A stretch of 63,934 nucleotides of DNA, counting the filler, from Octopus bimaculoides (Eukaryota), in assembly GCF_001194135.2 (NCBI RefSeq). It is 7 parts of 6 records of this genome, joined end to end, with 100 filler letters (N's around TTAATTAATTAA, not from the genome) between each part and the next. Parts side by side here need not be neighbours in the genome. Positions count along the whole stretch, not along the records: positions 1 to 22,544 come from NC_069009.1; 6 more parts are not named here. One strand, 5' to 3'. Shown here one piece after another: positions 892 to 40,844 of this stretch. A model generated the notes under the pieces. The model had not been told where the DNA came from and did not search any database. It saw nothing but the letters and a program-made list of their open reading frames with translations. A program made the position numbers and the translations under genes. Position 1 is the stretch's first letter. Every line of letters begins with the position of its first letter.

Positions 892-917
892 AAAGGACCA
901 TGAGGAAACAATATCGA
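892..917 (+). CDS. Possible 26-nt upstream exon of the ANK-RING-DD gene (…RTMRKQYR; ATG at 900 could be the start)
   Basis: Acceptor gtttatttcAG at 890-891 and donor CGA|GTGCGT at 918. Ends in phase 0 and joins exon 1148 in frame (MRKQYR-VNQRNN). No other AG between about 983 and 1145. The true 5' end may lie outside the window. Confidence 0.45.
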
Positions 918-1147
918 GTGCGTGTGTGTGTGTGTTTGTGCGTATGTATGAATACGCATATGTGTGTGGTGTATACACGCAAGTATAAATTCAATATAAA
1001 CCACATTTAATTACTCCCCACCCATTCATTCCACCTGTTTAATTAATCTGTTACCTTCTCTTCCCTTTTTCCAAATTATTGTCTTTTAATTCTTCTACCC
1101 CACTTTCTGGACTGATTTTCAACGCATCTATTCATTTCCTTTTTCAG

Positions 1148-1302
1148 GTGAATCAACGAAATAACTTTGGTAAAACACCTCTCCATTTGGCCTGTTCACA
1201 TGGATACGCAGACACAGTTTGCCTTTTAATTAATCACACTGGTATCGATGCCAATGCGGTGGACAATTATGGTGACACACCTCTACATCTGGTAGTTCAA
1301 CG
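1148..1302 (+). CDS. ANK-RING-death domain protein (MIB-like E3), exon: ankyrin repeats 1-2
   Basis: ttttcAG|GTG…CG|GTAAGT. Encodes VNQRNNFGKTPLHLACSHGYADTVCLLINHTGIDANAVDNYGDTPLHLVVQR, with two TPLH motifs. Phase 0 to 2. Confidence 0.93.
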
Positions 1303-1601
1303 GTAAGTCTCCATTGGATCTAGAATATCCAAATCTGTTTCTTTTATATATTCAATAATGTTTGTTATCTTTTATTGAGTCATTCATGTCATAATCCCAG
1401 CATGGTGCAATCATCCTTCCCTCTTTCACGCTATAATGACGCAATAATTTACTTCATTGATTAATCATTACCATAATTGTTGTTGTTGTTGCCTGACTAG
1501 ATTCTTTATTTCATCTCATCCTAAATTACCACAATGATACAGGTTCAAATCCTCCTTTGATCCCATATAAAACTACCTCCCATCTATCTCTCTTTCTTTC
1601 T

Positions 1602-1686
<85 letters not shown>

Positions 1687-2426
1687 AACTTCCGTCTTCC
1701 AGTATTCACATTTGTCTTGTTATGTTCCATGTTCAAGCTAGAGTATCTACTATCACTCTGGGGTCAGTATAATCTGTACCAGTAATACCCAGGAGTTCTT
1801 TGAATAAACTGTCCTCTCTCTTTTCTCCTCTTCTTGTGTCTAATTACTGTTGGAGAAAATAGCTTGTAGCATTTATTTACTACTCTTTATGTTCTGAGTT
1901 CAAATCCTGCCAAGGTCACCTTGTCCTTCCATCTTTACAAGGTTGATAAAATACAATACCAGTTATGTAATGGAGTCCATATAATTAACTGTAGCCCTTG
2001 TCTCCCTCCTAAATTTCATGTTTATATCACAGTTGTCCATTGTACCATATATGCATTTCTGTTTACTCAGGTAAGTATGAGTCATTGTTCTACTGTTTAA
2101 AGTGTATGTTGACAAACTATATGTGTGTGTGTGTGTAATAATTACTGTAATTAGGTTACGATCATCCAATTACTTTGGTAATTAATGATCAACTAATTAT
2201 TGATTATCTCTGTGATGTTTGTATTTTTCATGTTTTTCTTTCCACTTTCCGCAACTTCCAGACAACACATTGATGCGATGACTTTTCTGTTGTCCCNNNN
2301 NNNNNNNNNNNNNNNNNNNNNNNNNNNNNNNNNNNNNNNNNNNNNNNNNNNNNNNNACTAATTATTGATTATCTCTGTGATGTTTGTATTTTTCATGTTT
2401 TTCTTTCCACTTTCCGCAACTTCCAG

Positions 2427-2463
2427 ACAACACATTGATGCGATGACTTTTCTGTTGTCCCAG
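2427..2463 (+). CDS. ANK-RING-DD gene, 37-nt exon (R)QHIDAMTFLLSQ
   Basis: cttccAG|A…CAG|GTTAGT. Phase 2 to 0. Completes ankyrin helix 2 in frame. Confidence 0.88.
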
Positions 2464-2488
2464 GTTAGTTAACAAATACATATTATAT

Positions 2489-2694
2489 AAACAATTACAG
2501 CGTGGAAAGTGTTTATAAGCCATTTAAAAATACACAAAAACCGTTAGATTCACTCCAACATTTAAATCTAATGAATAGGTTGCGGTCTCAAAGAGACGAA
2601 AATATTTTAGCAAATTAAATTTAAATGAAGTGAATCTAACGGTTTTTGTGTGTTTTTAAATGGCTTATAAACACCTTCCACGCTGCAATTGTTT
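2489..2694. mobile_element. Foldback MITE-like element just downstream of the 37-nt exon
   Basis: aaacaattacagcgtggaaagtgtttataagccatttaaaaatacacaaaaaccgttagattcact versus agtgaatctaacggtttttgtgtgtttttaaatggcttataaacaccttccacgctgcaattgttt (imperfect IR of about 65 bp). Confidence 0.8.
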
Positions 2695-3077
2695 TTGCTT
2701 TAGCACATTATCTCAGATCAGGTCACTTACTATGCAAGTACATCTCCGTAACATATTACATACACTCTCTAGTATTTCATAGATCTGTTTAATAGGAATT
2801 TCATCAAGATGCCAGTGAATTAATGGGGTTGATTTAATCACCTGTACCCCCAAACCCTTTACATGGTAGATATTTAGTCTGTGGAAGAACTGTATATGAT
2901 CATGATGTAAATTGATCATCATCATGATGATGGTGTTGGTGGTGGTGACGACCCAACTGATGACCATCATTGGCAATAGTATCTTTAATGGGCAGATGAA
3001 ACACGGTCGTTATGAAATGAACACAAATATATCAGATTTAATGACTCTCTCTATATATATGCGTGTGTGTGTGTGTC

Positions 3078-3128
<51 letters not shown>

Positions 3129-4276
3129 NNNNNNNNNNNNNNNNNNNNNNNNNNNNNNNNNNNNNNNNNNNNNNNNNNNNNNNNNNNNNNNNNNNNNNNN
3201 NNNNNNNNNNNNNNNNNNNNNNNNNNNNNNNNNNNNNNNNNNNNNNNNNNNNNNNNNNNNNNNNNNNNNNNNNNNNNNNNNNNNNNNNNNNNNNNNNNNN
3301 NNNNNNNNNNNNNNNNNNNNNNNNNNNNNNNNNNNNNNNNNNNNNNNNNNNNNNNNNNNNNNNNNNNNNNNNNNNNNNNNNNNNNNNNNNNNNNNNNNNN
3401 NNNNNNNNNNNNNNNNNNNNNNNNNNNNNNNNNNNNNNNNNNNNNNNNNNNNNNNNNNNNNNNNNNNNNNNNNNNNNNNNNNNNNNNNNNNNNNNNNNNN
3501 NNNNNNNNNNNNNNNNNNNNNNNNNNNNNNNNNNNNNNNNNNNNNNNNNNNNNNNNNNNNNNNNNNNNNNNNNNNNNNNNNNNNNNNNNNNNNNNNNNNN
3601 NNNNNNNNNNNNNNNNNNNNNNNNNNNNNNNNNNNNNNNNNNNNNNNNNNNNNNNNNNNNNNNNNNNNNNNNNNNNNNNNNNNNNNNNNNNNNNNNNNNN
3701 NNNNNNNNNNNNNNNNNNNNNNNNNNNNNNNNNNNNNNNNNNNNNNNNNNNNNNNNNNNNNNNNNNNNNNNNNNNNNNNNNNNNNNNNNNNNNNNNNNNN
3801 NNNNNNNNNNNNNNNNNNNNNNNNNNNNNNNNNNNNNNNNNNTATATATATATATATATATATGCGAGTGTGTGTGCGTGTGTTTATGTTTCTTCGCGCC
3901 CCTGTGCGTGTACAGTTTTATGGATGTGTACACTAATCCCCCTTTATTAGTATGTGGCTATTAATATGAACCCCTTATTAATATAGCAGCATTATAAGTA
4001 CACATTAGAAATTATAATTCTTCTTTACAAGACTTGATCTGCTAACCATGTGTTCAGTTTAGTTCAACTCCCCAAAGACATCTTAATAAAATTATCACGT
4101 CTCTAATACATACTCATAGAAAGTTATAGAGAACCTTATCAAGATTAACTTCACTAACAAGCAACAAACATACATGATTGGCTTGATCAAGTACCCAGCT
4201 GAAGACAGTAATAAAACATTAATATTCACCCTAATTTTCAAGTAAAGTTTCATTTCCTATTTTTATCTCCACAAAG

Positions 4277-4486
4277 TTTTCAGTGAAAGTGGATATCAGG
4301 AACTGTGATAATATGACACCATTGCTTGAAGCCGTCTCCCGGGGTCACCTTGGAATGATACGGAAGCTGATAGCAAGGGGGGCAGACGTTAATGCTGTCA
4401 ACAATGAAGGGAGCAATTGTCTGCACCTTGCAGTGAAGAGGACGGTGTTTCATTCTGAGTACCGACCCTTGTGTCTTTTAGACAAG
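4277..4486 (+). CDS. ANK-RING-DD gene, exon: ankyrin repeats 3-4
   Basis: Acceptor aaAG at 4275-4276 is the first AG after the pyrimidine tract and keeps the frame. Encodes FSVKVDIRNCDNMTPLLEAVSRGHLGMIRKLIARGADVNAVNNEGSNCLHLAVKRTVFHSEYRPLCLLDK. Donor AAG|GTAACT. Phase 0 to 0. Confidence 0.9.
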
Positions 4487-4599
4487 GTAACTTTTAAAAC
4501 TGTACGTGAATATATATGTGTGTATTTGTGTGTGTGTGTGTTCTTTCTTTACTATTAAGTAATCAAGTCTCCCCTAATAACCCTAGTTTTGTAACTAAC

Positions 4600-4900
4600 A
4601 ACATTCCCTCTCCTTCCACCCTCAAAGACATAGCTAACTGAAGCTCCTTTTTCACCACTTTATTGCACACCTTCCTTCGTCGACCCCTTCCACACGTTTC
4701 TGCCAAATTAGAGATCAGCACATCTTGATGCAGTTATCTTCATCCATATGAATTACATAACCATACCAGTGCAGTCTTCTCTCTTGCGCACAACATCCGA
4801 TGCCTCATAAACCCAGTTTTTTTCTCAAATCCACTTAATTATGGAAACCTTATTGATCTGTTTGGATATGTCTGTGTGGCGTTGATTTAGTTGTTATGTC
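4600..4900 (-). mobile_element. Decayed RTE-like LINE 3' fragment
   Basis: Minus-strand translation QERRLHWYGYVIHMDEDNCIK resembles the RTE C-terminal RLRWYGHVxRM motif. Stops and frameshifts present. Confidence 0.6.
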
Positions 4901-5401
4901 TGAAGACATTACTATGTTGTTGGTGTCTTCCTTCCTGGTATAACATACATTATTTGTGGTGTCCTATTTATATATACAATACTTTCCCATAAGTATTTCT
5001 CCTGCTATGGCCTGTTGGCTTTTTCAAGCCAGTTGTGTAGATAGGTTCTTGTTCGTTTGTTGTGTTTTATTATTGTGACATTTGTTCCCTTATATTTTGC
5101 ATATTTGACTTGATGCTATGATGTTTTTATATTGTTTTTTTTTTTTATTAAATATTTTTTGTTATTTGTGATTGACAAGTAAATATTTACTCATTAAGTA
5201 TCATCAATCTTGATGTTAACCAATAATGTGTGTTTTGCTCAATATAATGATCATAAATATTGTCTTAATGGAGAAAGTAAAGTTAAAAACAAATGGAAAT
5301 GGAAAATGGATTCGACTAGAAATGATGCAAGAACTCAACAATGTGTAATCAGTTTATCATTGGATAAACAAACTATGTGTAAATGTATATTTGTGTAATC
5401 A

Positions 5402-5619
5402 TGTTGTGTGGACGCCCCCAGACAATAAGTAGGCTAGTCCAATACGTATAAATAGTGGACGTGATAGCTAGTCGTAGAAGTGTCGCGTAGAGCGAGCTGG
5501 AGCCATCGGTAGACTTGACGTCGAGTTCTTTTAAGTTGAGTCGTTGGAAGGGAGAGTTCGGTAGTTGAATAGAGGTATGTTATTGGCGAAGGCACGCCAT
5601 CCGAACGTGCGATATAACA
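5402..5619 (+). mobile_element. Solo LTR (218 bp) in an intron
   Basis: TGTTG…TAACA termini. Flanks aatca/aatcc (5-bp TSD, 1 mismatch). GC-richer than the flanks, with a TATAAATA box. Orientation is tentative. Confidence 0.65.
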
Positions 5620-5632
5620 AATCCTTTACTCG

Positions 5633-5667
<35 letters not shown>

Positions 5668-5679
5668 CATCATTTGTAG

Positions 5680-5855
5680 TTCTGCACTGAGCTCAAACTA
5701 AGCAAGGAAAAGAGGCTCTCTGGTGTGGTGGCTGCTTGTTATCTAGCCAGCAAGGGTGCCGACTTTTACCATAAAAATTACAAGAGTAACGCACCGCTGG
5801 ACCTCATTGAAAATGGAAATTTGAAAGAAAAATTACGAACATTTTTACTATCACG
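5680..5855 (+). CDS. ANK-RING-DD gene, exon: MIB-type last ankyrin segment
   Basis: tttgtAG|TTC…CG|GTAAGT. Encodes FCTELKLSKEKRLSGVVAACYLASKGADFYHKNYKSNAPLDLIENGNLKEKLRTFLLSR, resembling the Mind bomb ACFLAxxGADxxxxNxKGxSPLDL segment (recalled consensus). Phase 0 to 2. Confidence 0.9.
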
Positions 5856-7530
5856 GTAAGTATACAGTAACAATAACAAAATTCTTTGTGTGTGATCATA
5901 TTTATATGTTTATCTAGCTTAAATTCTAACAATGCATTATACAATCACTAGTTTCTTGATGAAAGACTATACAATTTCCAGAACATTTTACTATCCAGTT
6001 TGCTATACATAGTTCAAGTTGTTATACACCCACTTGATATGGTTGGATGATCTGTTGCACCTTCTTTTATCCTCAGTTCTTTCATCGATATTTCTTGTCA
6101 GTCTCAAATAATGAGGCTTCTAACACGTTTATATGGTACTAATACTTCACATGCAGCCCACATGGAATTTAAGATGTGCTGAATGTTAGTGTTGATATCT
6201 CAGGGATTGTAAACTTGAGGCCAGTCAGAGCCTTATTCCTGAGCCTGGTATCAGTAAAAGCAAGCAGTTTTGGAGGTTTTTCTTCCTATCCATTAGTGAT
6301 ATGTTGGGAAGATTAGAGTATGATTAGAATCCGACAATTGTAACATGGTAGTGAGACTGATAAATATTTCAGGAGCAGTGGTAAACAGCAGATCAAAAGT
6401 GTTGTTACCTCTTGTGGATGAGATGATGATCTAAGACCAGTTTGAAGCTAACGCAAAATCAAGATCATTTGCATTTTGTGACCAGTGAATGGTTTTCCAA
6501 TCATTATTTGGGGAACTGAAATCACCTGTATGACATTATGTGCATCCATAGACGCAACTCTAAAGATGTCAAAAAGCTGTATACTATGATGGTATTTTGG
6601 AGGATTGTAAATGTTATATGTTGCAGAGAAATACCTTTTGCTGTGACTGGTTCAAATCCTCACAGGCAACTACTGAAACGCTCAAGCAAACATAGACCGC
6701 CACACCACCTCCATGGTAATTAGAGAGGTCTTTGTGAAACAAAATGTAGCCAGCCATGCTAAAAATACCGTTAAACAGTGAAGAATGTGTCCAATTTTGA
6801 CAAATGGGATTGGAATCATTATTTTTAATGTAAGATTCAAAATAATGGATTTTGTTGTATAATCTGCGGATATTTTAAAAACAATGATTTGTATTTGGAT
6901 TTAAATGTGTCATGATTCATAGAAGAGGATTATTGTTCTTGTTTAGTTTTCTGTGGCCTTTCCAGTTTTGCCCAATTTTGGTTCTATATCCTCAGACAAA
7001 CTTGCATCTCTTTTCCAACTTGTATAAGTCATGCTTCAAGGGAGCTGCAATACGTAATTTCAGGTGTACGTCAGGCGATATGCTAGAACGAATTCAATGA
7101 GCAATTTGATTTTCACGTTTGGCCTTATTAGAGTCTTAACAGTATGAAAGTGCTAGAGAAGAAGTTTAATCTAACGAGTCTGGATCCAGGTTGAGAACAT
7201 GTTTTGGAGGCACACATTTGAAGTGGACAAGTTGTCAAAAAATGTTTGTGGATCAATGAACATGGACTCAGCTATAACTAGGGACAGTTGTGTACACAAG
7301 GCAAACCTGAAATGAAATGTTTTGCTAAAACAAACGTCACACATCGACTGGTTAAGGAATTGAAACCACAATGTTACGATCATGAGTTCAACACCTTAGC
7401 GACTAGGCCATGTGCCTCACTCTTGTCAGTGTAGTTCCTCATAATATTTTGTACTGTAAACATGGACACAATGTAATATTTGTTACAAATGAATGTTATA
7501 AGTGGAATGTGTTTTTATTTTCTTCTGCAG

Positions 7531-7670
7531 GTGTATGCTTTGTGAAGTAAATGAGGCCACTGTGGAGTTACAACCCTGTGCACATAATGCGGTATGTGGA
7601 GAGTGCTACACAATTAAACTTAAAAGATGCCCCAAGTGCAGAACATGTATCAAGAGCAAAAGTAAATTTG
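7531..7670 (+). CDS. ANK-RING-DD gene, RING finger exon (C3HC4, IAP/MIB type)
   Basis: tctgcAG|G…G|GTAAGA. Encodes CMLCEVNEATVELQPCAHNAVCGECYTIKLKRCPKCRTCIKSKSKF, spacing C-x2-C-x11-C-x-H-x3-C-x2-C-x7-C-x2-C. Phase 2 to 1. Confidence 0.93.
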
Positions 7671-8841
7671 GTAAGAATATTAATTGATGATCTGTCTGTG
7701 CGTCACATGGAGTTTATGATGTGGAGTCTACTTCATGTTGCTGTGTAGATCCAGGTCTTTCACAATGTGGTAGAGTTACGATAAAGGATCTCCCAGGTGT
7801 CTTTTCTCTTTGATAGTATATCCATGAATGCATCCATTAAATATTGTATTTATCCAAGTAGGAAACTTGTCACACATCAAACGAGTACTGTCTGCAACAG
7901 ATGACTAATACATTTCACTGAAACATAAATGGCGACTACCTGAAATATCAATAAATCTCCAAGGTCTCCTCAGTAAATATCAACGTTTTACATTCAATTG
8001 TCCGTCAGCTGCTATAAGTGATTAATGATTTATCGGTATCTTTGAAAACTGATAATTAAGGACAATAATACTTACTATAACATCAGGGCTAACTTTGTAA
8101 TGTAGGAATTTGAATGATAAAATCTCAATTGAGAGAGTTTACGGGCCAACATTAATAAGTGAGTCTGACTGTTAAATCAGTTGTGTTTGCATGTTGGTAA
8201 TCGGTAAAATGGAAAAGTTACAACATATTTTACGAAGTTGTCCTACAGAATTTCTTCATGATTTTATCATCTTAAAGACCTCAGATACAGTAGTTTGATT
8301 AAATATCAACTCTGTATAAGAATTTTGATCATTAGATTATTTTCATCGCATATTGAAGTAGTATAGAACTGTGAACATAAGTTTATGTTTATACAAAGCA
8401 TATTTGTTAACATAAAAATACAGATAGAAATAAAATATGAGTTCCCAATGTGACTTGGACACAACTCTGTAACTATATATAATATACATTTGTAACAATG
8501 TTTGAATAACATTTACCACCCATATAGAAATTCTTATACTCACACTTGTTGGTTTTTAAATTATATTAATGCTAATAGAGGGAAGCTTTTCAGAGTCTTT
8601 TACCTTTTGGTTTTAATTATGACTTGATTATTTAGGTTCAAATCACTTCCTGACGACTGGTCATTGTTAGATGACCAGAAATAGAATTTATTAGTCATTG
8701 GCACTGGACCTCGTAATATTTTTGTTTGATTGTTCATGGAGCTACCAACTGTGTTGAGACGCAATCGTATTCATTATAAGGAAGGTCACACACGCTCCTT
8801 AGTCAGGTTATATACATTCTATATCGATATCTAGTACCACG

Positions 8842-9143
8842 GTGGAGGCGCAATGGACCAGTGGTTAGGGAAGCGGACTCGCGGTCGTAGGATCGCAGTT
8901 TCGATTCCCAGACCGGGCATTGTGAGTGTATATTGAACAAAAAAGAGCTCCACGTGGCTCCGGCAGGGGGTGGTGACGAACCCTGCTGTACTCTTTCACC
9001 ACAACTTTCTCTCACTCTTTCTTCCTGTTTCTGTTGTGCCTGTATTTCAAAGGGTCAGCCTTGTCACACTCTGCGTCACGCTGAATCTCCCCGAGAACTA
9101 CGTTAAGGGTACACGTGTCTGTGGAGTGCTCAGCCACTTGCAC
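8842..9143 (+). mobile_element. tRNA-derived SINE family B (tRNA-Arg-like head)
   Basis: GGAGGCGCAATGG…GTGGTTAGGG (A box) and GTTTCGATTCCC (B box). The body is nearly identical to the copies at 17744 and 45192. Confidence 0.85.
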
Positions 9144-9920
9144 CTTGATAAATGAGCTGCGACGTCACTGGTGCCAAGCTGAGTCAGCCTTTGCCTTTCC
9201 CTTAGATGACATCGGTGGCATGGAGAGGGGAGGCTAGTATGCATGAGCGACTGCTGGTCTTCCATAAACAACCTTGCCCGGACTTGTGCCTCAGAGGGTA
9301 ACTTTCTAGGTGCAATCCCATGATCAGTCATGACCTAAGGTGGTCACAAAAACAATTTAGTACCACAATGCCAGGCAGCATGTTATCATATTATTTATGT
9401 ACCCCGTTAACGTGATAATTAATCAGTTAACATTCAAGATACATACTTCTATGTTGAACTGTAAACTTATTTTGTCAAAGAATTATCTTCCCTCACCTAA
9501 CATTTTACACCTTGTTACCCTTTATATAATTCTATTGCTTTACTATGTAGAGAACCACATGCCTACAAATGGTATTCTGGACTTCCACAGCTCAGTCAGG
9601 GCCAGGTGTAATTTCGTCTTGGCAGACTTACTATCAGTGTGAACACCCTGTCTTTTTTCACTGATTGTAAATCTATCATGACATCCATTAAATATTATCT
9701 TTATCAAAATAGAAAATTTTTGTTTGCCGCTGAGAAATTTCATAGATGTGGCATAGATTTAAGAAAGCAAAGAGGAAACTAAGAGAAAACCAGCTTTATC
9801 AAGTAAGGATTAAAGGGGTAATTGCAGAATCGTTGGATTATGTACGATGTCTTAATAGACTGAGAGAGGTGGAGGTGGATTTCGGAAGGTTAATCTATTT
9901 TTGTAGAAAGTATAAACATA

Positions 9921-10324
9921 GGCGTAGGAGTGGCTGTGTGGTAAGTAGCTTGTTTACCAGCCACATGGTTCCGGGTTCAGTCCCACTGCGTGGCACCTTG
10001 GACAAGTGTCTTCTACTATAGCCTCGGGCCAACCAAAGCCTTATGAGTGGATTTGGTAGACGGAAACTGAAAGAAGCCCGTCGTATATATGTGTTTATAT
10101 ATGTGTGTGTGTGTATGTTTGTGTGTCTGTGTTTGTCCCCCAACATCGCTTGACAACCGGTGCTGGTGTGTTTACGTCCCCATAACTTAGCGGTTCGGTA
10201 AAAGAGACCGATAGAATAAGTATTAGGCTTACAAAGAATAAGTCCTGGGGTTGATTTGCTCGACTAAAGGCGGTGCTCCAGTATGGCCGCAGTCAAATGA
10301 CTGAAACAAGTAAAAGAGTAAAAA
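9921..10324 (+). mobile_element. tRNA-derived SINE family A (CORE-like central segment, internal (TG)n, conserved tail)
   Basis: GGAGTGGCTGTGTGGTAAG…GGTTCAGTCCC head, GCACCTTGGACAAGTGTC segment, tail …GGCCGCAGTCAAATGACTGAAACAAGTAAAAG. At least 10 related copies in the window. Confidence 0.85.
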
Positions 10325-10468
10325 CAGTATATTTAACAAAACCTTAGTGGTCACCAGTGGAGTATTTATGATAGAAATGTCTGACAGCAACACAATTTAC
10401 GCTTTAAGAAAGATTAAAACAAAAACACTTTTACTCCATATTGTAAAACTTATAAATATTTATTTCAG

Positions 10469-10540
10469 ATAGTTTAAAGATGGAGGAAAATCACTTCCAT
10501 AGCACGGCAAAGATATTGTCTGTTAAACAGCAACAAGTTG
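10469..10540 (+). CDS. ANK-RING-DD gene, 72-nt linker exon
   Basis: tatttcAG|AT…G|GTAAGT. Encodes DSLKMEENHFHSTAKILSVKQQQV. Open frame, phase 1 to 1, fits both neighbours. No domain homology, so less certain. Confidence 0.72.
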
Positions 10541-11339
10541 GTAAGTATAAAATAACTGTACTTAATTAATCTCAGCAAAATTTACTTCACCTAAGCATAT
10601 TTTATATGTCGGAATGGCTGCAAATAGGTTCCATTCCTAATTGCCAACAGAAAAGTTGGCTGTATTATAATTCTAATTAAAGATATTACTGATTTTTAAT
10701 AAAATTTCCAGCAAGGTAAAATTGATAAATTAGAAAATATAATAGAGTTAATGTTGTCATTTGGAACACAAAACTAATAATTGTTGTTGTTTAAGGGTAA
10801 ACGTGTGCCTTAATGACAACGTTTTTGTTTTACATTTTCACTAATTTCACTAACGTTGTTGTTGCCTCGGTGGATGTCTCTCAAAATCTGACAGACTTAC
10901 AATGATATGTGTTTCAAGTGTGAACACCCAATACTTTTTCACTGACAGTAAATCTATCGTTACATCCACTAAACATCGTCTTTATCCGAGTTAAAGACAA
11001 TATTTTGTTGTTGAGACAAGCATTGTTTGTCTCTCTCTTTATGATAGATACTGGCTGCAAGATACAATAAATTATATCGTCCTCATTGAATAGGTGGTCA
11101 CTGTCCATGTCAGTTCTTATTAACAGTTACTGCCCACCTTCATTGGCTGAGGAACATATTTCATTAAAACATTTCAGCTTTTCTCTTGTATTATGCCCTT
11201 CCTAACATCAACCACTTTATAAAGGGTCCTTGGAACATTTTATTCTGCTCAACAAAATTAAACGTTGAGCATCTTATGCAATGAGATATCAAATTCGTTG
11301 ATAGAAGGGAAGTAAACAGATTAGAGAGAAGGTACATAA

Positions 11340-12490
11340 GAAGCCTTATGTGGTTATTAGGAAGCTGTTTGCAGATGCTAATAGCAGCAGGCTAACATGC
11401 ATTGAAGATCAACTGAACAAACATATACAAACGACCTACAATGACCCAAAGCGAGATCAACCATTACCACTCAGCGACAGTTTGAAATGCACAACGAAAC
11501 CAGGAATCAAATCTCAGCTTGGAGATTACAGCAAGAAACAAGTATATAGCTGAGTGAAGAAGGCAAGACCAAACTGTGACCCTAGAGGTAACGGTGTACC
11601 GTATAAAGCGTAAAATATTGTATTCATTTTATGTTATAAGCTTTACCTAATACTAAGAGAGTTGTAGTATAAAGGTTAACTGATTGATGACCAAAGCAAG
11701 GCAGAAGGAGTTTACTTACCAAAGTAATTTGATGCAGAACTGATTCACCAGTTTCAACCTTGAATGTAGATGGCAAGATATACATGGGTGTATTTTATAA
11801 GGCATCAGCTATACATCTACAAAATAATGACTATGTGATTGAAAGTACCCAGAAGACTGGAATTTCTGGCATTCTTGGGTGTGGGAATCTTACGTTATCA
11901 ATCTGGGATACGATACGAAACAGACAGAAGAATAAAAAGGGATTTGCATGTTGTATCTTGATCTGGTTAATGGTTATTGTTCTGTACCACACAAATTGTT
12001 GATGGAAGCGATAGACTTCTTTTATATATGAAAACCGATTAAGGATCTGAAAAGGAGTTGCTATAGCAATTTCAAGAAGTGGCTCAGGACAGAAGATTTC
12101 ACAACAGACTGTCATCGTCTTAAAATTGGAATTGCTGTAGGTTGCACAATATCAGTCATTTAGCTTGTGCTTGTTATGGAGATGTTACTGATATCAGAAG
12201 AAAAGGATGACATAACAATATTAACAACGTTAGTGGATGACATAACAATATTAACGTTAGTGGATGACATAACAATATTAACAACAGACCACAAGGATAT
12301 CCAAATAGATCTGGATAAAACGGATTAAGTAATTACTTGGTTAAGAATGCGGTTTAAAGCAAATAAGTATTGCAGTCTATCAGTTGTCAGCGGTCATCAG
12401 AAGCTTGTGCGGTTCAAAAGAACGGGCGAAACCACGCCCAAAGTTAAAGAGAAACCTGTAAAACGTTTAGAACAGTGGTTCACTACCTCA
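11340..12490 (+). mobile_element. Decayed HERO-like (R2 superfamily) non-LTR reverse transcriptase fragment
   Basis: Frame-broken motifs: HIQTTYNDPKR, GNGVPYK, AEGVYLPK, LNVDGKIY, STQKTGISG, YLDLVNGYCSVPH, GIAVGCTISV, DDIT, EKPVKRLEQWF. These resemble HERO-type RT motifs recalled from memory. Confidence 0.7.
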
Positions 12491-13097
12491 TTGTCCAGTA
12501 AGAATAAAGGTGTTTAGATCACGGATGGATTAACAGCAATAGATAATTGAAAACTACTGGACAAATACCAGATTTGATGCTTACAGTTTGGTCTGTATCC
12601 CCCGTCATGCTTATATGCATTGTTCAGATATTTTTCCATTGCAATAATGTGTAGATGAACGCTGATATGTAGTTGCGCAAGTGTACAATGTTTAAGGACA
12701 CATTTTGTCCCTTTTCTGTTTCTCATGTGTAGAACTAATAATTGCTAAACTGAAAAAGTATCCGCTTTAGTTAAGGAGTCTTCAAATATTTCTCTAAGTG
12801 AATGATATTCTAGTGAATTGCGATGTGTGCGATAAAATTAAAGGTTAGTAGCAGCAACCTTTAGGAAATCAAGTAGGCTTATGTTTATCCAACTTGAAAT
12901 GGTGTGTCATGTGGTAGACCTAAATATTGAACTGTTACATGGTACCACTGCAGAAAGTATGAAAATGTTGACCAAAAGCACTGTGGTTAGCAGTTGACCA
13001 TAGATGTGTAGAAAGTCACGTAATGATGAAATAATATTATTAATAAAGAGAAAGAAATTCTACTATAAATTGTTAAATTTGGAAATATTTATTTCAG

Positions 13098-13169
13098 TGA
13101 TTCCAGAGCTGAATAAGAAGGATCTTCTGATGGTGGCAAAGAGGTTAGGAGGTAAATGGCAGAGAGCGG
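13098..13169 (+). CDS. ANK-RING-DD gene, death domain N-terminal exon
   Basis: atttcAG|TG…G|GTGAGT. Encodes VIPELNKKDLLMVAKRLGGKWQRA (death-domain helix 1-2, LxxVAxxLGxxW). Phase 1 to 1. Confidence 0.88.
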
Positions 13170-15287
13170 GTGAGTAGAAGATAACAGCATCTAAGTGATT
13201 TTAATAAGTTTTACTTCGCCTTGGCATGTTTTGTTTGTCAAAACGATCGAGAACGGGTTCCATTCCTACTTCGCAATTGAAAGGCTGTATTTATTGTAGT
13301 TCCGTAGGCCCAGGTAAACGTATAGTCCTCTCTCTAAACAAGCTCCATTGTTGATTATATTTATGAGTGGATTGAACTTAGTACTTGTAAGATAATGAAG
13401 CATTCACTAATTATAAAATAATTATCCTAACAGAAGTTATAAACTCAACTTGATTTTGTTTCCGAATTGAAATCATTTTATACTTCGTTACATTATAAAT
13501 GTCGTATGGAAAGGTATGAACATCACAATATCCCATTTCCCCTTGTCTAAAAGTGTAACAACATAAAATATCATCTATACAATGTTTTCATTATTTACAG
13601 CAATGGCTTGTCCCTTTCTATGGTACCTATTCACATATAGGTAGACCAAACCATTGAGAGATATCTTTACCAGAAACATAGAGCGGTGCTGGGGACTAGA
13701 TTTGATCCTTTCATTCCTGACTTAAGAAGTCATGACAATATCCTCTCAGTCTGCTGATAGAAATGATTTATCTAAATTAAGAGAGGACATCATTTATGAC
13801 ATCGGTCAACTTGTTATACCTCTGGTATTGAGATAAAATGTACCAGTCATATATTCATACACTGGGGTAAACTCAGTTCACAAACAACGGTTCATTATTA
13901 CTATTGTCTTACACTCATTTTGTATGCCATACAAAAATAAGAGGAATGACTAGCAAATGTGGATTCCTATATGCTAGAAATAGATGATCAATTTCTACAC
14001 TCATTAATAAATTTTAAACTCATTTTGTATGCGTTACACGACTTCTCTCACAGCTGTTGTTCTTTGTCAGATTTAACTCCTCGTTTTCTTCTATTTGTGT
14101 CTCCTAGCATTTCTTTATCCAAAGTTTATCTTCCGTACTCCTCCCATATTTGTACCACTTCTCTTGTGTACTATTTCTGATCCTTCTAAAACCTAGTTTG
14201 TCTTCCAGCTTATCTGTTCCCTGTATGCATTCTCACACATTAACATTACACTTCTAGTGAAGTATGCTCACTCCATTTCTTGCCAGTTTTCATACATCCT
14301 CCACATCCGATGCAATATTTCACTTTACAAACACACATCATACAACCTCCATTTTCAAACAAAATCCCTATGTTGCTAGTAGTCATGTACATTTTCCCCT
14401 TATTTTTTTTCGAAATACTTTACTACATACACATCCTTCCTCTACATCAACCTGCCAGTGATCCTTCTGCGCCTATTATTTAAAATGGGTACACATAGAA
14501 TTTTTATTCACTCTTTGTTCCTGCATATCAAATATGGTAACTTCCCAGATGATGTAGATATTAGTGAATGCAGTGATTCCTTTAGGACCCAAGTGTCATA
14601 TGTGTATGGTGTAGACGTTCGTGACTTTTGTCTTAATTCCTGCAAACTAAAACTTTTCTCATTGCCTGGTTTACTTTAAGACTTCTCCATAATTGAAATT
14701 TCTCTAAATTGTGGCCTTGATCCATTAAAAGAGACTCTTATTATGAGTCATGACCCTATTAAAATTAAGCTGGTGTCTTCTATAATATTTGATGTGTACC
14801 TAATAGTGTTATATTTTGTACTTTGTGTCAATGAGATCATTCTGGTATCTTGTTGGTTTTAACTGGTCCATAAGTGGTGCATAATATTACTAGTATTGTT
14901 TGATAGTCCATTTTCCACTTTCTAGATACATCGAAATGTTGATAATTTATAAGTATTAATTAGTCAGAGGAGGCGAGGCATCACATATGATTATTTCCGG
15001 CATTGCTCATCAGATGGTTTTCAGTGCCTTCCTTAAAAAATAAATGGGGATCAAACATTATTTATTAAAATTTCTTCATCTTCATTCCTTCTATAAACCT
15101 CCTTCTTATTATTGTCAACATCTTGAGAAATAGAGAACAATGGCTTATTTCTTTCAGGTTTCTTAACTATCTTTTCTTCCTCTATTGGTATAGTTTGTTT
15201 TTGTTATATTTATAACAAACTACGTTCCACATATTTTATATTATTATTAATTGTATTGCAATTTGTTTCTTCTTGTATCTTTTGCAG

Positions 15288-15493
15288 GTATTTTCTTGGA
15301 AATTGAGACTTACCAACTGGATGTTATCAAACACGACAATCCTAATGATACTGTAGAACAGAGCTTCCAGATGTTGTACAGGTGGTTTACAAGTTGTGAT
15401 CCAGACACGCGTACAACCAAAACATTAAGAGAAGCTCTTGAGGAAGCCGAATGTTTCGATGCACTCAAATGTCTATCATCAGAAGAAAAGTAA
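15288..15493 (+). CDS. ANK-RING-DD gene, terminal exon: death domain C-terminal part and stop
   Basis: tttgcAG|GT…TAA. Encodes GIFLEIETYQLDVIKHDNPNDTVEQSFQMLYRWFTSCDPDTRTTKTLREALEEAECFDALKCLSSEEK*, a death-domain pattern (LxI…I…P…EQxxxMLxxW…LxxAL). Exons from 1148 to 15493 sum to 1068 nt = 355 aa + stop. Confidence 0.92.
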
Positions 15494-16519: not shown

Positions 16520-17730
16520 TAAAAAGTAAAAAGTAAAAGAGTCAAAAGGAAGAGTAAATACGGTTAAGCAGCTTTTGGATCTTTTTTAAAACGGGGGCCA
16601 CATTTTTCATTAACGAAACACTTTGAAACTTGGAACACTGGTAGAATGTGTCATATAAAACATCTTTTTCTCTTAGTCTTCTTTAAAAAAAAAGAAATCC
16701 CTAAGTTATTCCATGTTAAAGTTGTCGTATTTCTGTAATTTCAACCAATCACTGACGTCCATTCAGCCGATATACATTAAGTGCCGACTACATAAACAAA
16801 CGATTCTGAAAGAATTCTATTGGTGATAAAATTATTATTTCCTTNNNNNNNNNNNNNNNNNNNNNNNNNNNNNNNNNNNNNNNNNNNNNNNNNNNNNNNN
16901 NNNNNNNNNNNNNNNNNNNNNNNNNNNNNNNNNNNNNNNNNNNNNNNNNNNNNNNNNNNNNNNNNNNNNNGGTAAAACAGCAAATTTAAAAAGAAAAAAG
17001 CAAATAAAACGAAGAAAAAAAAAGAAAATGAAAAAAGCAAATTTTAAATGAAAAAAGAAGTTATGGAGATTAAATACGCTTTACACCGCTTAATCAGCCA
17101 AAGGAGTAAATGTAAACAACTGAATACTTGTCAGTGATTGGTTGAAATTATCGAAATAAGACAATTTTTTACATGAAATAAATTCGAATACAAAAATATT
17201 TTTCTGTTCTATAACACAAAATAGATAAGTATTCGAAGTTTGAAAGTCTTTCGGTACCAAAAACACTACGTAAAACATTAATGAAAAATGTGGCCCCCGT
17301 TTTAAAAAAGATCCCAGCTTTTTAATCGCTACAAATGTTCCGATACATACCGATCCTCGTATATACAGGATTTAAAGTTGGGTTTAAATTAAATTATGTA
17401 ATGATTCACCTGTATAAGAAGATCTATATGTATCTCCTGAGGCGATACTCAGTTGCTGTCTCCGTCTTTTTCCATTTTTTTTCATTTCTGAAAAAGCCAT
17501 GGATGTTGTAGCATGGAAATCTAGATTTACTTACGGAGACAGCAACTGAGTATCGCCTGAGGAGATACATATAGATCTTCTTATACAGGTAAATCGTTAC
17601 ATAATTTAATCTGTGTCAACTTTAAATCCTGTATATACGAGGATCTGTATGTATCGTAACATTTGTAGCCATTAAAAAGCTGCCTAACCGTATTTACTCT
17701 TCCTTTTGACTCTTTTACTTTTTACTTTTA
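16520..17730. mobile_element. Foldback element (outer) interrupted by a GGATC-MITE
   Basis: Left arm 16520-16576 plus 17323-17465 is the reverse complement of right arm 17533-17730. Loop of about 67 nt. Confidence 0.75.
16577..17314. mobile_element. Non-autonomous DNA transposon (MITE) with GGATC termini and 8-bp TSD
   Basis: TIR GGATCTTTTTTAAAACGGGGG / CCCCCGTTTTAAAAAAGATCC. TSD CAGCTTTT at 16569-16576 and 17315-17322. Internal N gap. Confidence 0.88.
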
Positions 17731-17743
17731 TCTATCTCTCTAC

Positions 17744-18123
17744 GTGGAGACGCAATGGCCCAGTGGTTAGGGTAGCGGAATCGCGGTTTCGATTCCCAGA
17801 CAGGGCGTTGTGAGTGTTTATTGAGAGCGAAAACACCTAAAAGCTCCACGAGGCTCCGGCAGGGGACAGTGGCGAACCCTGCTGTACTCTTCCATCACAA
17901 CTTTCTCTCACTCTTACTTCCTGTTTCTGTTGTGCCTGTAATTCAAAGGGCCAGCCTTGTCACTCTGTGTCACGCTGAATATCCCCGAGAACTTCGTTAA
18001 GAGTACACGTGTCTGTGGAGTGCTCAGCCACTTGCACGTTAATTTCACGAGGAGGTTGTTCTGTTGATCAGATCAACTGGAACCCTCGTCGTCATAAGCA
18101 ACGGAGTGCCAACAGCAACAACG
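17744..18123 (+). mobile_element. SINE family B, near full length
   Basis: Same head and body as the 8842 copy. Ends in …GGAGTGCCAACAGCAACAAC. Confidence 0.85.
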
Positions 18124-20640: not shown

Positions 20641-20973
20641 GACTTATTCTTTGGATGCCTAGTACTTATTATATCGGTCTCTTTGCCGAACCGCTAAGTT
20701 ACGGGGACGTAAACACACCACCACCGGGTGACAGGCGATGCTGTGGGAACAAACACAGACACACAAACATATACACACACCCATACATATATATATATAT
20801 ATATATATACATATATACGACAGGCTTCTTTCAGTTTTCGTCTACCAAATCCACTCACAAGGCTTCGGTCGGCCCGAGGCTATAGTAGAAGACAGTTGCC
20901 CAAGGTGCCACGCAGTGGGAATGAACCCGGAACCATGTGGTTGGTAAGCAAGCTACTTACCACACAGCCACTC
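20641..20973 (-). mobile_element. SINE family A
   Basis: Reverse complement of the 9921 copy, with internal (TA)n. Confidence 0.85.
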
Positions 20974-34089: not shown

Positions 34090-34593
34090 NNNNNNNNNNN
34101 NNNNNNNNNNNNNNNNNNNNNNNNNNNNNNNNNNNNNNNNNNNNNNNNNNNNNNNNNNNNNNNNNNNNNNNNNNNNNNNNNNNNNNNNNNNNNNNNNNNN
34201 NNNNNNNNNNNNNNNNNNNNNNNNNNNNNNNNNNNNNNNNNNNNNNNNNNNNNNNNNNNNNNNNNNNNNNNNNNNNNNNNNNNNNNNNNNNNNNNNNNNN
34301 NNNNNNNNNNNNNNNNCAGATTTTTCAATATGCTAAGCCACTGGTTTTAAATTGATATTGATCAAATTAATATTCAGTTGTTCACCCTTATTATTTAAAT
34401 TTAAATAACCATGTTCTCTAACCGGCAAAATTCACCGCAGAGAATTATTTTCTGCACAATTATTTCCGGTATTTGGCGCGCCAAAACAAAGACTTTTGAA
34501 ATATAACCCCAAATGTAATTGGTAGAACAATATACATGTTCAATCTCATGCAGTCGTCTCGTGTATAGTTCTGCAAATTATATTGCTATGATG

Positions 34594-34665
34594 ATCACAC
34601 TGATGAGTTGCGGACATTTACGTAAGTGATTACGTCAGTGTTAACAACGAAGCCAGGTATGTGAT
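34594..34665 (+). ncRNA. Degenerate type I hammerhead-ribozyme-like motif
   Basis: ATCACA-CTGATGA-GTTG…long hairpin…CAAC-GAAG-CCAGG-TA-TGTGAT. Stem I is 6 bp. GAAG replaces the canonical GAAA. Confidence 0.4.
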
Positions 34666-39912: not shown

Positions 39913-40844
39913 AAGAGAGATACATAGACGCATAGATAATTGAAATATGTCATAAAGCATTGTCAATTTGAAACTTGTATAAAAAGAAGCCACAACCATT
40001 CAAGGATTATTCTTTTTTTTTAAATAAATGACATTCATTTTAATCTATCGATATATCGAAGCCGCATCGCTTCATAACTCAGTGTCTTAAAACCTCTTGA
40101 AAAGATCTGCATCACATTTTCCCGAGATGATGCGAAAGTATAAAATTTCACAGATTACCAAAAATATGAGAACACAGGAGAAGTATTTTCAGCTGTGGAC
40201 CGAATAACTGTTTATGCAGGAAAAAGAGGCAACATATTAAGAAGAGATGCTTTCTCTGCAAACTTTTCGACATGCGAAACCGTCCGAAGAGGGCGTTTGC
40301 TGGGGAATGTAAATTTCATATTAATATTGTTTAACTAATTCAACTCCGACAGAAATTGATTCCAAATAATCATACTCTTCGAATGGTACCTGATTAATGG
40401 TAACTAAGATCTATAGGCGAAAAAATGGTAAATGTAAATACATGTGATTCAATTTCAAAAGAAAAAAGTAATACATTCTTTTCATGTTTGTATATGGTAC
40501 TTGAAAATGTAACAATATATGCAACCACAAACTTACATATATATTTAAACACATACATACACATGTATATTATACATACATATATTATACACACGTATAT
40601 ATATTCATGTACATATGTATGTATTTGAATAATAGAGCATCCCACATATAATAAGCAGTGAGCGAAAGAACCCCATACATACTCTATTAATCGAATACAT
40701 CTTGATCACTTCTGCGTAAGCCTTACTTACCTAATTTACATGAAGTGGCACCACATTTAACTGCTTCTAAGACCTCAAAAAACATATTATCCTACCTCAA
40801 ATTCAGCATCTCACTTTAAGAGTGCATTATCTTCATGAACAGAA

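Follow-up and report, generated by a model that had tools for sequence, protein, structure and literature searches.

A predicted ankyrin-RING-death-domain protein derived from Mind bomb 2 in a tandemly duplicating Octopus gene family

The locus and its gene model

The window, by which we mean the whole stretch of 63,934 nucleotides that was analysed, joins seven parts of the Octopus bimaculoides genome, and its first part (positions 1-22544) carries a predicted gene whose product links ankyrin repeats, a RING finger and a death domain in a single chain. This part is identical to GCA_001194135.2, scaffold CM046629.1, about 11,463,439-11,485,982, where runs of N lie on both sides of it. It has a G+C content of 36% and is eukaryotic in character, with AT-rich long introns, microsatellites and interspersed repeats.

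The gene model was built by six-frame inspection and by tblastn with related proteins. It consists of eight plus-strand exons between 1148 and 15493, all with AG acceptors and GT donors and in compatible phases; the eight in-frame GT-AG exons proposed in a preliminary description of this DNA were thus all found, the exon starts at 13098 and 15288 exactly where they had been placed. The spliced product is 1068 nt long and comprises 355 codons and a stop (15491-15493). Residues 58-355 are identical to P0001, a 298-aa NCBI protein named 'E3 ubiquitin-protein ligase MIB2 [Octopus bimaculoides]', so that an earlier guess that an automatic MIB2-like annotation might already exist proved right. The exons are as follows.

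1148-1302, + strand: exon 1 of the available part; ankyrin repeat 1 and the first half of repeat 2 (VNQRNNFGKTPLHLACSHGY...TPLHLVVQR)
2427-2463, + strand: exon 2, 37 nt; helix 2 of the second ankyrin repeat (QHIDAMTFLLSQ); the NCBI start is the ATG at 2443
4277-4486, + strand: exon 3; ankyrin repeat 3, first half of the interrupted repeat 4 and start of the insertion (…NCLHLAVKRTVFHSEYRPLCLLDK)
5680-5855, + strand: exon 4; remainder of the insertion, followed by the other half of the interrupted ankyrin repeat (GVVAACYLASKGADFYHKNYKSNAPLDL), a Mind-bomb-type signature
7531-7670, + strand: exon 5; IAP-type C3HC4 RING (zf-C3HC4_3), CMLC…CAH…CGEC…CPKCR
10469-10540, + strand: exon 6, 72 nt, phase 1 to 1; linker DSLKMEENHFHSTAKILSVKQQQV, present in P0001
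13098-13169, + strand: exon 7, 72 nt, phase 1 to 1; death-domain helix 1 (VIPELNKKDLLMVAKRLGGKWQRAG)
15288-15493, + strand: exon 8; remainder of the death domain, with the stop codon at 15491-15493

Exon 1 (acceptor ttcag/GTG, donor ACG/gtaagt) is colinear with the paralogs P0002, P0004 and P0007 and does not appear in the NCBI model, which begins after a gap at 2297-2356. Two assembly gaps fall within the gene.

2297-2356: assembly gap 1, 60 N, with an exact 105-bp duplication on both flanks (2192-2296 = 2357-2461)
2192-2296, no strand assigned: pre-gap copy of the 105-bp overlap, with a truncated duplicate of exon 2 at 2262-2296
3129-3842: assembly gap 2, inside the intron between exons 2 and 3

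The first gap is an uncollapsed overlap of two contig ends, and no sequence has been lost there. Exon 2 is complete only in the post-gap copy of the overlap, and the 105-bp overlap probably explains both the start of the NCBI model at the internal Met (2443) and its omission of exon 1. No exon has been lost in the second gap, because the proteins of the paralogs remain colinear where exons 2 and 3 meet. At this junction the exon 3 acceptor acaaag/TTT gives 'FSV', as in P0001; a pairing of donor 2467 with acceptor 4284 ('VM') was rejected, since 2463/4277 reproduces P0001.

The piece does not reach the 5' part of the gene, and the public record upstream holds only N. Full-length paralogs, for example P0004 (508 aa), are longer at the N-terminus by about 130 residues, which form further ankyrin repeats. 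In the nearest paralog, the exon before the counterpart of exon 1 is found ~6.9 kb further upstream; the same position here falls within the N run, and the gene is therefore cut by the edge of the piece. The start at 892 given in the preliminary description could not be upheld: the ATG mini-exon at 892-917 (MRKQYR) is unsupported, matches no paralog and lies just outside the region alignable with the paralogous locus, though an alternative first exon may exist. Read-through beyond the donor of the RING exon stops after five codons (GKNIN*) and would make an isoform with ankyrin repeats and RING only possible. As judged from the sequence, then, the locus is a protein-coding O. bimaculoides gene, truncated at its 5' end by the assembly, with predicted junctions between RING and death domain.

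Domain composition and predicted structure

The 355-aa product contains, in order, four ankyrin repeats (the last of them interrupted), a C3HC4 RING, a disordered linker and a death domain. Pfam had been expected to return Ank, zf-C3HC4_3 and Death. Ank (1.2e-24) and Death (PF00531, residues 275-350, 4.7e-7, 30.3 bits, cut-off 22.6) were recovered, while zf-C3HC4_3 (residues 193-235, 7e-6, 26.2 bits) fell slightly under its cut-off of 27. All eight zinc ligands of the RING are nevertheless in place, with the spacing C194-x2-C197-x11-C209-x-H211-x3-C215-x2-C218-x7-C226-P-K-C229-R230. There is a single RING, and the death domain stands where canonical Mind bomb proteins carry a further one, in agreement with what had first been noticed at this locus. 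No Pfam match to a BIR domain was found in the 355-aa product.

Searches of solved structures with the whole protein, by sequence and by fold, were swamped by designed ankyrin and generic ankyrin-repeat chains and were uninformative on the architecture, and the searches reported here were done segment by segment with the RING, the death domain and the interrupted ankyrin repeat. The RING segment matched the RINGs of cIAP1, cIAP2 and XIAP (best cIAP1/cIAP2, ~1e-5), the death-domain segment matched ankyrin-3 (the closest, E 1.4e-5), PIDD, RIPK1, Fas and TRADD, and the interrupted ankyrin segment had as its top solved structure the ankyrin repeats of human MIB1 (8v0e, E 0.0017).

An AlphaFold2 model, for which 36 family sequences were used, reaches a mean predicted local distance difference test score (pLDDT) of 85.5, with the ankyrin stack, the RING and a helical death domain all folded and linker residues 242-264 predicted to be disordered (pLDDT <50). 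The death fold consists of six helices; DSSP assigns five to the modelled death domain at 270-347, the first of them long, in a block with pLDDT 85-95. In this model the death domain is predicted to be a compact all-helical bundle.

Descent from Mind bomb 2

The origin of the ankyrin-RING part is revealed by comparison with P0266, a canonical MIB2-like protein of O. bimaculoides that has MIB_HERC2, ZZ, Mind-bomb SH3 repeats, ankyrin repeats and two RINGs. Residues 8-263 align with residues 492-770 of P0266 in a single colinear BLASTP alignment (36% identity, E 3e-50), which spans the insertion in the last ankyrin repeat and continues into the RING. MIB2 proteins of ~920 aa from many phyla align likewise with residues 1-236 (240 BLAST hits, 45 of them inspected), and their scores drop with taxonomic distance, from 150-161 bits in octopus through 135-147 in bivalves to about 105 in vertebrates. 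The Mind bomb origin suggested at the outset is thereby borne out. A neighbour-joining tree recovered the family as monophyletic in 195/200 bootstraps, grouped it with octopus MIB2 paralogs in 129/200, and joined that group with MIB2 from a sequencing-run assembly in 160/200; the tree is rough, having raised a numerical warning for saturated distances, and its deep nodes are uncertain.

MIB1 and MIB2 share with the octopus family homologous, colinear ankyrin repeats, an interrupted last repeat (…ACYLA.xGAD…PLDL) and a RING directly after it. They differ in having a MIB/HERC2-ZZ-MIB/HERC2 module, SH3 repeats and a terminal catalytic RING (ccRING3 of MIB1, the last of MIB2), so that neither the defining substrate-binding part nor the catalytic part is kept in the octopus family. 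By Pfam, MIB_HERC2, ZZ and SH3_15 (PF18346) were found in none of the 36 aligned family members. The MIB/HERC2-ZZ-MIB/HERC2 module, present in P0266 and its orthologs, is absent from the product and from the Met-starting full-length members P0004 and P0124; its absence rests on these paralogs because the gene's own 5' end is missing. Sequence comparison thus identifies the product as the C-terminal half of a duplicated MIB2 (ankyrin repeats, interrupted last repeat and RING1), in which a death domain preceded by a variable linker has taken the place of the terminal catalytic RING and the N-terminal substrate-binding domains are absent.

Truncated Mind bomb paralogs are also found in octopus. 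P0180 and P0261-P0265 (from O. sinensis, O. vulgaris and O. bimaculoides) have SH3 (REP) and ankyrin repeats without MIB_HERC2 or ZZ, and P0180, P0263 and P0264 also have a RING. The SH3 (REP) repeats (PF18346) occur in P0180 and P0263 as well as in canonical MIB2. On their domain content, these truncated paralogs may be intermediates between canonical MIB2 and the ankyrin-RING-death-domain family.

Origin of the linker

Exons 6 and 7, which encode the linker and the first helix of the death domain, are both 72 nt long, run from phase 1 to phase 1 and have similar flanks. Positions 10430-10600 and 13059-13229, compared in register along their 171 nt, are 63% identical, where 20,440 other offsets give 28±3.6% (maximum 44%), and the identity is higher in the intron flanks of the two copies (80% and 68%) than in the exon (only 50%). 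In the nearest paralog, where the cassette regions lie at about 34489-34616, 40267-40356 and 43806-43966 of L002, two linker exons carry the same flanks, and one of them still resembles helix 1 of the death domain (EEKQRETMAKRVGS vs KEKDLLRVAKRLGS). The shared flanks together with this residual likeness indicate that the linker, in this gene and in the nearest paralog, is a diverged duplicate of the cassette with death-domain exon 1. Other members, whose linkers are variable and rich in repeats, may have acquired them in the same way.

A family expanded in Octopus

To place the gene among known proteins we used a word-indexed protein search and a HMMER scan in which the C-terminal half was compared exhaustively with 1.84 billion representative proteins. 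In the former, 81 octopus clusters ranked ahead of any other taxon, all of them from O. bimaculoides, O. sinensis or O. vulgaris and mostly named MIB2-like or MIB1-like; the latter gave only 197 matches at E ≤ 0.001. None of the matches looked up from outside Octopus combined a RING with a death domain, the non-octopus ones being death-domain-only proteins (amphioxus, Ridgeia, a fish) or ankyrin-RING proteins (bryozoan), which agrees with the lineage-specific gene that had been proposed. 'Octopus-only' here means merely that none is known elsewhere, because the best 120 canonical MIB2 matches listed include no named decapodiform or nautilus proteome, and absence of the family from squid, cuttlefish and nautilus is for that reason uninformative. 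No published description of the family was found in the literature on Mind bomb or MIB2 and death domains in octopus, cephalopods and molluscs.

The complete architecture of interrupted ankyrin repeats, RING and death domain is present in at least 57 protein clusters of the three Octopus species; a further 25 clusters have ankyrin repeats and RING only, and in five, which combine ankyrin repeats with a death domain, no RING could be detected. Across the 36 aligned members Pfam recognizes zf-C3HC4_3 in 34 and Death in 18. About half of the family has a variant of the death domain with a two-residue deletion (…LKI--DDES…) that Pfam Death misses, and domain-based censuses therefore undercount the family.

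A stretch of about 227 kb on the 11.99-Mb scaffold CM046629.1, from 11.466 to 11.692 Mb, holds four genes of the family. The nearest paralog (P0002), 114 kb away, is colinear with the gene under study through exons and introns at about 70% nucleotide identity. Compared with this paralog, the ratio of non-synonymous to synonymous substitution rates (dN/dS) is 0.52 overall, with 0.6-0.7 for the exons of the ankyrin repeats and 0.25 for the main exon of the death domain; being below 1, these values argue that the gene is not a decaying pseudogene. The best conserved exon is that of the RING, at 88% amino-acid identity. The synonymous rate itself (dS) is about 0.12 in exons 4-5 (5680-7670 vs L002 29694-33045) and 0.34-1.1 elsewhere, and identity in the introns flanking these two exons rises to about 80%, a pattern that suggests gene conversion around the interrupted-ankyrin and RING exons.

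Between species the family diverges rapidly. The best relative in O. sinensis or O. vulgaris is 52-54% identical, as against 82% for canonical MIB2, and this difference fits birth-and-death evolution. By its sequence relationships, the gene belongs to a fast-evolving family that duplicates in tandem and has members in O. bimaculoides, O. sinensis and O. vulgaris.

A death domain of the same type also occurs outside the window in P0151 (O. bimaculoides XP_014788728.1), an adhesion-type G protein-coupled receptor with leucine-rich repeats, a GPS motif and 7tm_2, whose C-terminal death domain is 49% identical to that of the gene in the window. In octopus this type of death domain has thus been shuffled onto a membrane receptor, which is a possible upstream partner.

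Comparison with known systems

Other known proteins share parts of this architecture. cIAP1 and cIAP2 (BIR-CARD-RING) have the same RING subtype, likewise carry a death-fold domain (CARD) and a RING in one chain, and act in death-receptor signalling; the CARD of cIAP1 restrains RING dimerisation. They differ from the octopus protein, which has no BIR and has a true death domain C-terminal to the RING, in that IAP RINGs lie at the C-terminus. Ankyrin repeats and a death domain are combined in one protein, as here, in the ankyrins, DAPK1, ANKDD1A/B and NF-kB p100/p105, but these lack a RING, whereas the octopus protein has no ZU5/UPA, kinase or Rel region and its ankyrin repeats are of the Mind bomb type. 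The expansions of Death-like and TRADD-N proteins in marine invertebrates follow the same pattern of repeats, ubiquitin-system effector and death-fold adaptor, and are likewise tandemly expanded, rapidly diverging and lineage-restricted (PMC8195603). Few or no TRADD-N expansions were reported for cephalopods in that survey (PMC8195603), and the octopus family differs from them in using a classical death domain and a Mind bomb-derived module.

The retained RING and the proposed function

While the structure and ancestry of the gene are well supported, its function has to be weighed among several readings. We favour, with a probability of roughly 0.55, a lineage-specific, MIB2-derived ankyrin-RING-death-domain protein that would act as a death-domain-recruited ligase, which we infer from the logic of the domains, the RING features of this copy and the part that mammalian MIB2 plays in death-receptor signalling. 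The last point, already raised in the preliminary description, is matched by a report that mammalian MIB2 ubiquitylates the death-receptor pathway components cFLIP-L, RIPK1 and CYLD (PMC7815719). The death domain would bring the protein into homotypic death-domain assemblies (MyD88-, FADD-, CRADD- or RIPK1-like), the ankyrin stack would hold a partner or substrate, and the RING would recruit a ubiquitin-charged ubiquitin-conjugating enzyme (E2). Clustering of death domains would supply the RING proximity that is otherwise given, in canonical Mind bomb, by the coiled-coil terminal RING.

The E2-contact features present in this copy are the hydrophobic L196, Pro227 and, at the linchpin position, Arg230. 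Arg230 occupies the position of R996 of MIB1, a residue that hydrogen-bonds UbcH5B (bioRxiv 10.1101/2024.03.01.582834). Neither Pro after the seventh Cys nor Arg after the eighth occurs in the RING1-type domains of the canonical proteins compared, and the canonical terminal RINGs compared have the Arg in eight of eight cases and the Pro in three of eight.

Several observations weigh against a ligase function. With BLOSUM62 local scores of 68-101 against RING1-type domains of canonical Mind bomb proteins and 42-49 against the terminal RING, the only RING kept is the counterpart of RING1, not of the terminal catalytic RING; the family has evidently kept the half of Mind bomb without a known catalytic role and lost both the substrate-binding and the catalytic ends. 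In human MIB1, ubiquitin transfer proceeds solely via the terminal coiled-coil RING3, RING1 and RING2 are dispensable, and an ANK-RING1-2 fragment is monomeric and shows no autoubiquitination with UbcH5B (bioRxiv 10.1101/2024.03.01.582834). C3HC4 is kept in 70 of 91 family RINGs, the other 21 being without the canonical ligand pattern, and among the 70 intact ones only 27 have R/K at the linchpin and 35 have Pro after the seventh Cys. The linchpin Arg seen in the preliminary description is thus real for this copy, but it sits in a RING of RING1 type and is no general property of the family. The N-terminal part of the gene is also missing from the assembly. Given the family-wide variation in ligand pattern, linchpin and Pro, catalysis is not uniformly conserved, and ligase activity in this protein is plausible but unproven because the homologous RING1 of human MIB1 shows none; it may be possible for this copy and is not a safe assumption for the family.

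The same observations feed the main rival, which we regard as possible but doubtful, namely that the protein is a non-catalytic adaptor or decoy whose RING1-type finger is structurally intact but inert, as in human MIB1, and which would serve as a scaffold or competitive inhibitor, occupying death-domain assemblies by means of its death domain and sequestering partners with its ankyrin repeats. Besides the RING1 type and the inactivity of human ANK-RING1-2, a regulatory hint comes from the slight increase of MIB1 signalling on deletion of RING1 and RING2 (bioRxiv 10.1101/2024.03.01.582834), and many paralogs have degenerate RINGs or no linchpin residue, quite apart from the five clusters without a detectable RING. 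An inert finger sits less well with the retention of all eight ligands in 70 of the 91 family RINGs, with the Pro and Arg that this copy and a subset of others have and the canonical RING1-type domains compared do not, and with the RING exon being the best conserved against the nearest paralog (88%).

Decidedly unlikely, in our view, is a sensor-type innate immune family, in which the variable ankyrin stack would itself bind non-self or danger ligands, the death domain thus set free would seed an oligomer for signalling, and the main task of the RING would be to control the protein's own turnover or the signal strength. Lineage-specific tandem expansion, fast divergence (dN/dS 0.6-0.7 in the ankyrin exons vs 0.25 in the death-domain exon) and the lack of any O. 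sinensis or O. vulgaris relative above 54% identity would suit it, as would the prevalence of repeat-plus-effector-plus-Death-like architectures among marine invertebrate immune expansions (PMC8195603), but dN/dS stays below 1, and variable ankyrin surfaces are expected of any ankyrin family.

It is highly unlikely that the model is an annotation artefact that borrows the death-domain exons of another transcript, or a truncated copy that is not expressed: although the 5' end is absent from the assembly, the read-through permits an isoform ending with the RING and 25 clusters have ankyrin repeats and RING only, the eight exons are intact with canonical, phase-compatible splice sites, dN/dS is below 1, the order of RING then death domain recurs in 57 clusters from three separately annotated genomes, and the missing 5' end is explained by the N run, not by decay.

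Extending the death-domain-recruited ligase further, one could imagine a class of cytosolic regulators of immunity or cell death peculiar to octopus, in which a death domain was grafted onto the 'spare' ANK-RING1 half of MIB2, the ankyrin repeats provide variable recognition, oligomerisation activates a RING with regained E2 features (Pro227, Arg230), and linker length is tuned by duplication of the 72-nt cassette, the whole being a cephalopod counterpart of the expanded TRIM-like and IAP-like families; we put this forward as a speculation that is unlikely to hold in full. Were the ligase mechanism true, a ubiquitin ligase would be wired into death-domain signalling by its own death domain and not via adaptors, and the apparently dispensable ANK-RING1 half of Mind bomb would prove reusable as a module in its own right. 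Members of a clear lineage-specific expansion in a cephalopod, from a group described as poor in such expansions in one survey of TRADD-N/Death-like proteins (PMC8195603), these genes are candidates for octopus innate immunity or cell-death control. For annotation, an assembly artefact has cut the public gene model short, and 'MIB2' is a misleading name for a protein with no substrate-binding domains and no catalytic RING.

Other features of the locus

Positions 1-22544 gave no matches in tRNA and Rfam scans. Three of the four assembly gaps have (GT)n and (TA)n microsatellites directly beside them. The introns and the region downstream of the gene contain interspersed repeats (83-199 nt, 88-93% identity; 8892-9149 and 17780-18043), among them an inverted pair (9928-10126 vs 20775-20973). 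Hairpins at 1-217, 2489-2694 and 17315-17682 are short near-perfect inverted-repeat elements resembling miniature inverted-repeat transposable elements. On the minus strand, a 105-aa open reading frame at 22209-22526 matches zf-RVT, a zinc-binding domain of reverse transcriptases (E 7e-6, 27.0 bits, slightly under the cut-off of 27.5), and is probably the remnant of a retrotransposon without long terminal repeats (non-LTR) at the edge of the piece.

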